Shown piece by piece: positions 54,501-56,265 of a stretch of DNA of 64,000 nt. The notes beneath the pieces are model-generated. The model saw nothing but the letters and a program-made list of their open reading frames with translations, made no database searches and was not told the DNA's origin. How positions within the stretch are numbered: the stretch's first letter is position 1; each line of letters starts with the position of its first letter. This stretch comes from Chara braunii (taxonomy: Eukaryota; Plantae; Charophyceae), in the NCBI GenBank assembly GCA_003427395.1, contig BFEA01000012.1, positions 4,875,676-4,939,675 of the forward strand. Reading direction: 5' to 3'. The position numbers were made by a program, and so were the translations under genes.

Positions 54501-56006
54501 GCTTCAACGCCAGGGTCTGGCACGTTTTGGCATTGGCAAGAGCAGCCTCCTGGACGGGCCAGCACTATATCAGACTGGCCCGCCCTGCAGGCTGCAGGTA
54601 GTTCATAGGGACGTCCCAGGCACTTCACGTGCAGTTCAGGAGGCAGGAGGTAGTCTTCAGGATTTGGCAGCAGCACTCTGGAGGAGCGCTGCAGTAGTAG
54701 TAGTAGTAGCGTTAGCAGTAGTCTTCAGCGCTGGGCGCTGGTAGGAGCTAGTACTAGAGAGAGAGAGAGGAATTGGGCAGAGGCCAGGGAGACTTACCTG
54801 CGGCGCCATAGCTCCAGCTTCATCTTCGAGGTACATGAAGCACAGCGCCACCTTCAGAGGTTAGTACCTGGCACATGAGAGAGAGAGTTCTTCTTCTTCC
54901 TCTTCTCAGTCCACCATCTCCCTCTCACCCTCTCACTACCTGACTTCACTGCATCCGCAGACTACGAGAGAGCGGGCTTGGTGACATTTGGATCCAGACT
55001 CGACATTGGGCTTCAGACATTTGACGAGGGATTATCTGGGACTTGTAACGAAGACTTGGTGTTGACGACATTCCCATCTTCCCCCTTCTTCCTCGTCTGA
55101 TCCCCTCCTCTTCGTCTGTGTATGGTCTGGACCTGGCGCATTCTTCCTGTGTGTAGCGCCAGGCCCCTTCACACCTTGTGATGAGGATGATGCATGTTTG
55201 GTCTGTATTGCGACATTGATTGGGCTAGTCATTGGTATTCTAGCATTCTGTTGCGCTGTCAGTCCCGGTCAGGTCAGGGCTTATATCTAAGTCTTCCCCT
55301 GCGTCATTATGTGCCATTTTTGTATGTATCAGGATGTACACTGCTTGTTGAGATTCCACAGCACTGCATTGTCCATTCAGTCCTTTTTATCACATTGCAG
55401 ATCCTTGGCTATCTAGATACATTGCCCAACTGGGCATGTAACATTGATACTCTCTCCCTGCGCTCATCCTACTCTCCCTCATACTTCACCCTCTCGATCA
55501 TAACTTCATTTTCCGCCCTCCTGCTTGTGACTTTGCTCCCGCTATACATTCATATGGGGTACTCATCTTCCTCCTGTCATCCAGATCGTTTACACTTCCA
55601 CATTCTATTTGTCATCGGGAAGAAGGACAAGGGGAAGAAAAAACTATGTGCCTGCTATACACACTACTTCTCCGTGCTGCTCTTCCTCCCTCCCTTCCTC
55701 ACTCACCGCCTTCCCAGCCTCCTGTTCCTGATCTCCAGTCATTACATTCCGCTAAACTCGGAGAAAGAACCATAGCCAGGGACACGAAATGCAGATCTGA
55801 TTTTCTCAATCTCGCCACTGCAATTGTCAACTGTTACATGCTTACAGTGAATAACAAAGATACAAAGTAGCACAAACAAACAAAAGGCGGTTTTCACTTT
55901 TTCTTACTTTTCAAGAACACATATACAATATATATCGTCACAAACAGAACTGCCCGGTAAAACCGTAGGCAGAGAGAGAGAAGAGGACAACAAACGAGGG
56001 GCTGTG

Positions 56007-56066
56007 ACAAACTGTTTCGTCGGAGTTTCACCGACTCATCAGGAGGCTGAACCCTCAACAGTCTGC
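56007..56066 (-). ncRNA. Type III hammerhead ribozyme
   Basis: Minus strand GCAGACUG-UU^GAGG-GUUCAG-CCUC-CUGAUGA-GUCGG-UGAAACU-CCGAC-GAAA-CAGUUUGU; complete core and three stems. Confidence 0.9.
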
Positions 56067-56265
56067 AGAATCCCCTCACTGATTACACTGTAAATGATAA
56101 TCTACCTTAACCAAAATCAAAGTAGACTATCACTCACCCACACCAGATGGAAAACTCTACAGACTGTCGGTTCACACCCCATCACAAGCCAGCAAAACAT
56201 CCACGAAACAAAGAAAGGTCTGTCACAGCCAAAAAATACACTCCAGACACGCCGCTGATACACAC

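Follow-up and report, generated by a model that had tools for sequence, protein, structure and literature searches.

A hammerhead ribozyme that lies intact inside an intron, in sense with the host pre-mRNA, raises the question of whether it cuts that intron during transcription and thereby acts on the gene, or whether it came with a mobile element and serves that element instead. We addressed this question for a locus of the charophyte alga Chara braunii within a window of 64,000 nt, a term that is used here for the whole stretch of DNA that was analysed. The complete motif could be read from the sequence of the minus strand, beginning with stem III (56066-56058 paired with 56007-56015; 9 bp, 2 of which are G:U) and the cleavage triplet G56059-U56058-U56057 (GUU), for which the cut is predicted between U56057 and G56056. 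These are followed by stem I (GAGG/CCUC, 4 bp, 56056-56053 paired with 56046-56043) with a loop 1 of 6 nt, the intact core CUGAUGA (56042-56036), stem II (GUCGG/CCGAC, 5 bp) with a loop 2 of 7 nt, and GAAA at 56018-56015, and an outer helix, GAGGGG/CCCCUC, is formed round the hammerhead by 56077-56072 and 56001-55996.

56007-56066, minus strand: type III hammerhead with a GUU cut site (sequence, RF00008, local fold, no core variant at 10% of reads or more)
55996-56077, minus strand: hammerhead with the outer GAGGGG/CCCCUC helix, 82 nt (MFE -34.7 kcal/mol, z -3.67)

When folded alone, the 82 nt adopted the three-way junction together with the outer helix. The conserved core bases were all found in place, namely CUGAUGA, GAA at 56018-56016, the pair A15.1-U16.1 as A56015-U56058, and U56057 at position 17, which is H and not G, and the three helices were arranged as expected, loops closing helices I and II but not helix III, which is open. 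The Rfam model RF00008 (Hammerhead_3) matched 56009-56064 from end to end with 45.8 bits and an E-value of 8.5e-9 (701 nt searched). This score is 2.7 bits below the curated gathering cut-off of 48.5, which is why the hammerhead is missing from the scan of the window at the gathering threshold. The alignment includes one non-standard pair in helix I, and the model also places a G.G mismatch beside the loop. The window contains the core pattern a single time, compared with no occurrence in 100 shuffles, and a chance occurrence of the motif was ruled out by the E-value together with the evidence from its family, as described below. All the features that a preliminary description of this DNA had listed for the hammerhead were thus located on the minus strand at the positions proposed, by sequence, RF00008 and fold, and the motif is a type III hammerhead as judged by all sequence and structure criteria except the curated bit score.

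The host gene is on the minus strand, and its parts that surround the motif are as follows.

57295-57375, minus strand: previous host exon, 27 codons (sequence, frame)
56266-56397, minus strand: host exon of 44 codons that immediately precedes the insertion (100% RNA contigs, one-strand reads, His_Phos_1 lead)
56258-56265, minus strand: GTGTGTAT, intron start (8 nt), donor GT (56265-56264) together with the 5' target flank (sequence; homology of copy B, see below, starts at 56257)
48925-56265, minus strand: host intron, 7,341 nt, containing the element (donor and acceptor read)
48859-48924, minus strand: next host exon, 22 codons (sequence, frame)

The intron begins with the donor GT and ends with the acceptor AG at 48926-48925, and the hammerhead lies about 200 nt into it, in sense with the host pre-mRNA. 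The placement in a 7.3-kb intron, in sense orientation and about 200 nt from the donor at 56265, which had been put forward earlier, was confirmed by the sequence and by RNA contigs. Two of the latter, X5 (1,432 nt) and X6 (911 nt), matched exon 56266-56397 at 100% and ended at its borders, indicating that spliced host mRNA exists; the matches extend to 56263 because GTG is common to the intron start and the next exon. In a raw stranded run (X24), the reads of this exon were on one strand only, with first mates on the + strand, and this orientation was therefore calibrated as that of minus-strand RNA. The host gene is expressed and spliced normally. Its exons bear motifs that we take to be histidine-phosphatase-like, and the 44-aa exon was nearest to His_Phos_1 clusters in a protein atlas with a score of 0.86, which is a lead only. 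The Pfam and PDB sequence searches with single host exons (22-44 aa) gave no match because the pieces are too short. As far as the exon sequences indicate, the host gene is probably a histidine phosphatase.

The origin of the motif became evident from RNA reads, which were placed at a likeness of at least 85% over 55750-56450, a selection by likeness to this copy that biases the variant frequencies. In X24, no reads were placed at 55750-55917, whereas the depth rose to about 4,200 at 55942-56061 and was 200-300 at 56062-56257, compared with 4-9 on the exon. The RNA depth over 55928-56257 was roughly 25 to 500 times that of the exon, with about 75% of the reads being ribozyme-sense, and this contrast indicates that 55928-56257 is a repeat, the RNA of which is far above host mRNA. 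The reads crossing 56257 ran into one shared family sequence (agreement 0.91) and not into the local flank. Therefore, the family element reaches further 5' and the window copy is truncated there, being without roughly the first 90 nt of a full unit of about 426 nt. The element ends at its 3' side with GACG (55936), which is followed by (AT)4 and then by a TG/TA relic, and other copies run into (TA)n. Its 5' flank, GTGTGTAT, consists of the first 8 bases of the intron, so that the element starts 8 nt after the splice donor, indicating an insertion into a GT/TA microsatellite that begins at the donor.

55936-56257, minus strand: 5'-truncated non-coding hammerhead element copy, 322 nt (RNA depth, alignment with contig L025 at 94.5-97%, shared continuation)
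55928-55935, minus strand: (AT)4, 3' end of the element, with a similar short AT run between the tandem units of L025 (sequence, reads, L025)
55918-55927, minus strand: TG/TA microsatellite relic, 3' target flank (sequence)

The element borders of about 55860-56090 that had been proposed are wrong, as demonstrated by the read depth and the L025 alignment. The accompanying idea of a short solo retroelement remnant was right as to a short, non-coding remnant and wrong as to solo, this being one copy of a very abundant and highly transcribed family. We propose, with a probability of about 0.85, that the hammerhead is part of a young copy, truncated at its 5' end (55936-56257, minus strand), of a very abundant, transcribed, non-coding retroelement of Chara braunii, and that this copy landed by chance, is mostly locked in a rod-shaped fold and serves the element. 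A host-selected, conserved intronic ribozyme, comparable to HH9 and HH10 of amniotes (Rfam RF02275 and RF02277), would likewise be of type III and on the sense strand of an intron, as is the hammerhead of the window. However, HH9 and HH10 are single-copy and conserved across species, whereas this hammerhead is in a young repeat copy with the borders of a retroelement and with an identical, expressed unit elsewhere, and selection by the host is hence considered very improbable.

To describe the family beyond the window, contigs from other sources were searched. The exact ribozyme patterns specific to the family had no match in metagenome contigs or viral contigs. A generic type III pattern was found at at least 120 metagenome loci (L001-L120), several groups of which had near-identical upstream contexts, suggesting families of repeats or phages that bear hammerheads and have no relation to Chara. 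Among the matches listed, L025 (BFBZ01014625.1) was the only contig that was related beyond the ribozyme core, and it carries the two outside copies that are available in sequence form, the remaining family data being read tables. Copy A (L025:504-775) aligned with 56199-55929 of the window at 94.5%, and copy B (L025:873-976) with 56257-56154 at 97%. With 97 nt between them and a start-to-start distance of 427 nt, the two copies represent 1.4 units head to tail, and the 97-nt spacer consists of a short AT run and the part of about 90 nt at the 5' side, L025:779-872, that is absent from the window copy. The ribozyme of L025 is decayed (26.2 bits), and the window copy is among the best preserved. 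The contig as a whole (L025:1-1110) starts and ends in poly(A) and has repeats of the CCGAACG type on either flank; it also contains a (GATA)n run and, at 441-470, an inverted 30-nt fragment of the 3' end of the element, and it looks like an assembled transcript or a chimera from Chara-like DNA.

A contig of 456 nt from the metatranscriptome of a rice-paddy RNA library (X18) was found to match more closely, its positions 120-448 being the same as 55929-56257 of the window with 0 differences over 329 nt. Its positions 1-22 repeat 56236-56257 and its final 8 letters are those of the family continuation, and the aligned pieces suggest that its first 30 nt are the same as its last 30 nt, which is how a 31-mer assembler would write a 426-nt cycle. 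The period of 426 nt in X18 and that of 427 nt in L025 come from two diverged sources with a matching short AT spacer, and a repeating or circularising unit therefore fits better than independent side-by-side insertions. The full family unit is about 426 nt long, and the period fits tandem copies or circular RNA alike; L025 proves that tandem units occur in a linear context, and a circle would be one of two candidate forms. The identity of 329 nt with an expressed 426-nt unit indicates that the window copy is probably young. The window locus itself is a single partial unit, blastn of 55600-56400 and L025:430-980 revealing no further copies within the 64,000 nt, and head-to-tail repeats are indicated at the family level only, by the 1.4 units of L025 and the putative 426-nt cycle of X18. 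The 426/427-nt periodicity is what is new here, with the motif itself being intact and the locus being ordinary for this genome.

The periodicity also bears on whether the copy could be the 5'-truncated 3' tail, as part of a pseudo-LTR, of a long autonomous Penelope-like element (PLE) of the Chlamys-2 type. In PLEs, 5' truncation of the copies is usual, and Chlamys-2_cBra carries its hammerhead at the 3' side (PMC8557442), but a short repeating unit fits better with a 426/427-nt period that recurs in two independent sources with a short AT run between units, and the translated ORFs adjoining the copy include none that is conspicuous by eye as a reverse transcriptase (RT) or a GIY-YIG nuclease. 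We consider this origin unlikely. Chlamys-2_cBra and a further PLE type of Chara (PLE-X) carry canonical hammerheads and are very abundant, with a bias for insertion into microsatellites (PMC8557442); the published bias of Chlamys is for (CA)n and (C)n, not (TA)n (PMC8557442). They are similar to the window element in their host and in the place of the hammerhead close to the 3' end, and also in frequent 5' truncation, partial tandems and microsatellite insertion (PMC8557442), the last three of which are all present in the window element or its family, as they are for Chlamys-type tails. They differ in being multi-kilobase and coding, whereas the window copy is non-coding, in a comparison that was made by description.

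Family variants, which were listed from 10% of reads upward, were in accordance with a ribozyme that is maintained in its core and stem III. The core positions had no variant at or above this level at a depth of 800-3,600, and position 17 (56057) was U with C at 11-45% and A at 18%, no G variant reaching 10%. The variants in stem III keep their pairs (56010 from G:U to G-C, 56061 from C-G to U:G and 56066 from G:U to A-U), and one at 56056 breaks a pair of stem I; several positions that are not part of the ribozyme have variants in 37-78% of the family reads. The suggestion that GUU had been derived from GUC is plausible at the family level in view of the C at 56057, but the change was not acquired at this locus; GUU was inherited from the source copy, because U is likewise found at this position in the expressed 426-nt unit, with which the window copy is identical over 329 nt. 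Contig junctions and loose ends at 56053-56060 adjoin (TA)n, indicating that there are copies starting at or near the cut site. Other family copies begin at 56011-56051, and the ribozyme cut therefore accounts for only some of the copy starts.

The two loops of the window hammerhead contain complementary bases, UUCA in loop 1 and UGAA in loop 2, for which a kissing interaction had been suggested, and these were invariant within the element family in RNA reads. Among 82 other hammerheads with a UGAAA loop 2, UUCA was found near loop 1 in 10, indicating no enrichment when compared with about 6 expected by chance for one 4-mer by our estimate and with 9 obtained for two control 4-mers together. 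Pairing between loops 1 and 2 as a general feature was hence rejected.

The RNA of the element (56257-55941, 317 nt) was predicted to fold into a rod at -144.4 kcal/mol (z -10.6), comprising 102 bp (40 A-U, 39 G-C and 23 G:U) between the following two arms.

56116-56255, minus strand: 5' rod arm, a G/U-rich 'anti-ribozyme' arm that is transcribed before the ribozyme (317-nt fold; antisense comparison)
55987-56111, minus strand: 3' rod arm, containing the hammerhead (fold; 53 of 60 ribozyme bases paired)

The opposite strand of the element folds at just -78.6 kcal/mol, and the rod is therefore specific to ribozyme-sense RNA. The 53 ribozyme bases that are paired in the rod include most of the core, and when the hammerhead pairs were forced, the ensemble was about 40 kcal/mol less stable than the rod. 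These energies are predicted for equilibrium; kinetically, too, the zipping of the rod should win, since the arm that pairs with the ribozyme (56255-56116) is transcribed first. The long hairpin thus probably keeps the ribozyme switched off in this model, and a transient active fold may be formed. When the element was folded with its flanks, the donor bases GUGUGUAU (56258-56265) were predicted to pair with the (AU)4 of the 3' end (55928-55935), which sets the 5' splice site at the base of the rod and may only reflect microsatellite complementarity.

These folds bear directly on the opening question. A ribozyme that is active in the host pre-mRNA would cut the intron co-transcriptionally and affect the expression of the phosphatase gene, and such an activity would be in line with the intact core and all three intact stems, with the sense orientation at 200 nt from the donor, and with the family copies starting at the cut site, which suggest cleavage in some setting. 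However, the complementary arm is made first and the ribozyme-competent folds are less stable by the above margin, spliced mRNA contigs are present, and reads are at zero on the unique intron, with no pile-up of read starts or ends at 56056/56057, the latter being weak evidence either way as it comes from poly(A) RNA reads. In addition, GUU is a slower hammerhead cleavage site than GUC. Co-transcriptional cutting of the intron, as the preliminary description had envisaged, is hence quite unlikely given the order of the arms, the energy gap of about 40 kcal/mol, the normal splicing and the lack of an end pile-up.

For the reading that we favour, of a retroelement copy that landed by chance, we propose the following mechanism. 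The element RNA, derived from tandem copies or circles, would be primed by its own AU-rich 3' end on a nicked TA/TG microsatellite and copied by the RT and the GIY-YIG nuclease of Penelope-like (Chlamys-type) elements, which are the likely enzymes. Early stops in reverse transcription would result in 5'-truncated copies such as that of the window, templates cut by the ribozyme in copies starting at 56055/56056, and templates longer than one unit, or circular, in tandem copies. It would be by chance that the window copy came to lie in sense orientation 8 nt past the splice donor. Within the host pre-mRNA, the upstream arm should zip onto the ribozyme strand while the latter emerges, which would leave the ribozyme locked for the most part and allow the usual splicing of the intron, and the ribozyme would serve the element, not the host gene.

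Several known systems share part of these characteristics with the Chara family. Animal non-LTR retrozymes, which have been reported to be derived from the pseudo-LTRs of Penelope-like elements (bioRxiv 10.64898/2026.07.22.740005), are similar in being short (170-400+ nt), non-coding units arranged head to tail with one hammerhead each, and in being highly transcribed, without LTRs and likely dependent on Penelope-like elements (PMC7229834, bioRxiv 10.64898/2026.07.22.740005). However, they carry a type I hammerhead, whereas that of the window element is a type III one in the style of plants and viroids, and the Chara family has dispersed 5'-truncated copies in TA/TG microsatellites, with circular RNA being putative. 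Plant LTR retrozymes share the type III hammerhead, the non-coding nature, the green lineage and a strongly structured RNA, but they are 600-1,000 nt long, compared with 426 nt for the Chara unit (PMC4918200), and the window copy is without an LTR pair, a second ribozyme and a 4-bp target duplication. An identity with plant LTR retrozymes was rejected, as LTRs are absent, the window contains a single hammerhead, and 55600-56400 is not repeated in it; nothing convincing as a tRNA-Met primer binding site or a polypurine tract was seen by eye in 55936-56257. Avsunviroid-type and viroid-like satellite RNAs are similar in their size of about 400 nt and in having a type III hammerhead hidden in a more stable rod, whereas the Chara family has thousands of genomic DNA copies, known mostly from read tables, and retroelement borders, and its rod forms in one polarity only. 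In a full-text literature search, we found no published short, type III, rod-shaped element in Chara.

The family might be a 426-nt, rod-shaped type III element of a streptophyte alga that exists as circular RNA and is recopied into TA/TG microsatellites by Penelope-like machinery, and hence a non-LTR retrozyme with a ribozyme of the plant/viroid type, linking the hammerheads of PLEs, plant retrozymes and viroid-like RNAs. This is a tentative proposal that we hold to be less probable than not by a good deal, and the 426/427-nt period in the rice-paddy contig and in an independent diverged contig would be the first hint of such a unit. The family joins a trait of plant LTR retrozymes, the type III ribozyme, with traits of animal non-LTR retrozymes, the tandem units and the Penelope-like link, and its presence in a close algal relative of land plants bears on the origin of plant retrozymes and hammerhead viroids. 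At the level of the locus, it is one more repeat copy with no sign of service to the host gene, and the interest is in the family and not in this intron. The locus also represents a natural test case, in which an intact ribozyme and a 102-bp RNA duplex are present 8-270 nt from a working splice donor and splicing continues.

Some other characteristics of the surroundings were also observed. Long ORFs at 50235-52900 on the minus strand, within the same 7.3-kb intron, look by eye like integrase and RT remnants of LTR retrotransposons; together with the hammerhead element, they indicate that retroelements of two or more kinds are present in the host intron. In the upstream intron of the host gene, a (GGA)n repeat some 50 nt long lies at 56690-56740 on the minus strand. 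The assembly is interrupted by runs of N in two places, one at about 49440-49900 and the other at about 61920-62850; microsatellites of (GA)n/(CT)n and of (CA)n/(GT)n border these gaps. Furthermore, six matches to U6 snRNA above the Rfam cut-off (45-95 bits) were found, all on the minus strand, at 5472-5572, 5902-5966, 25714-25814, 39340-39444, 40161-40261 and 48494-48593, the last of which follows host exon 48859-48924 at a distance of about 265 nt, on the strand of the gene itself.
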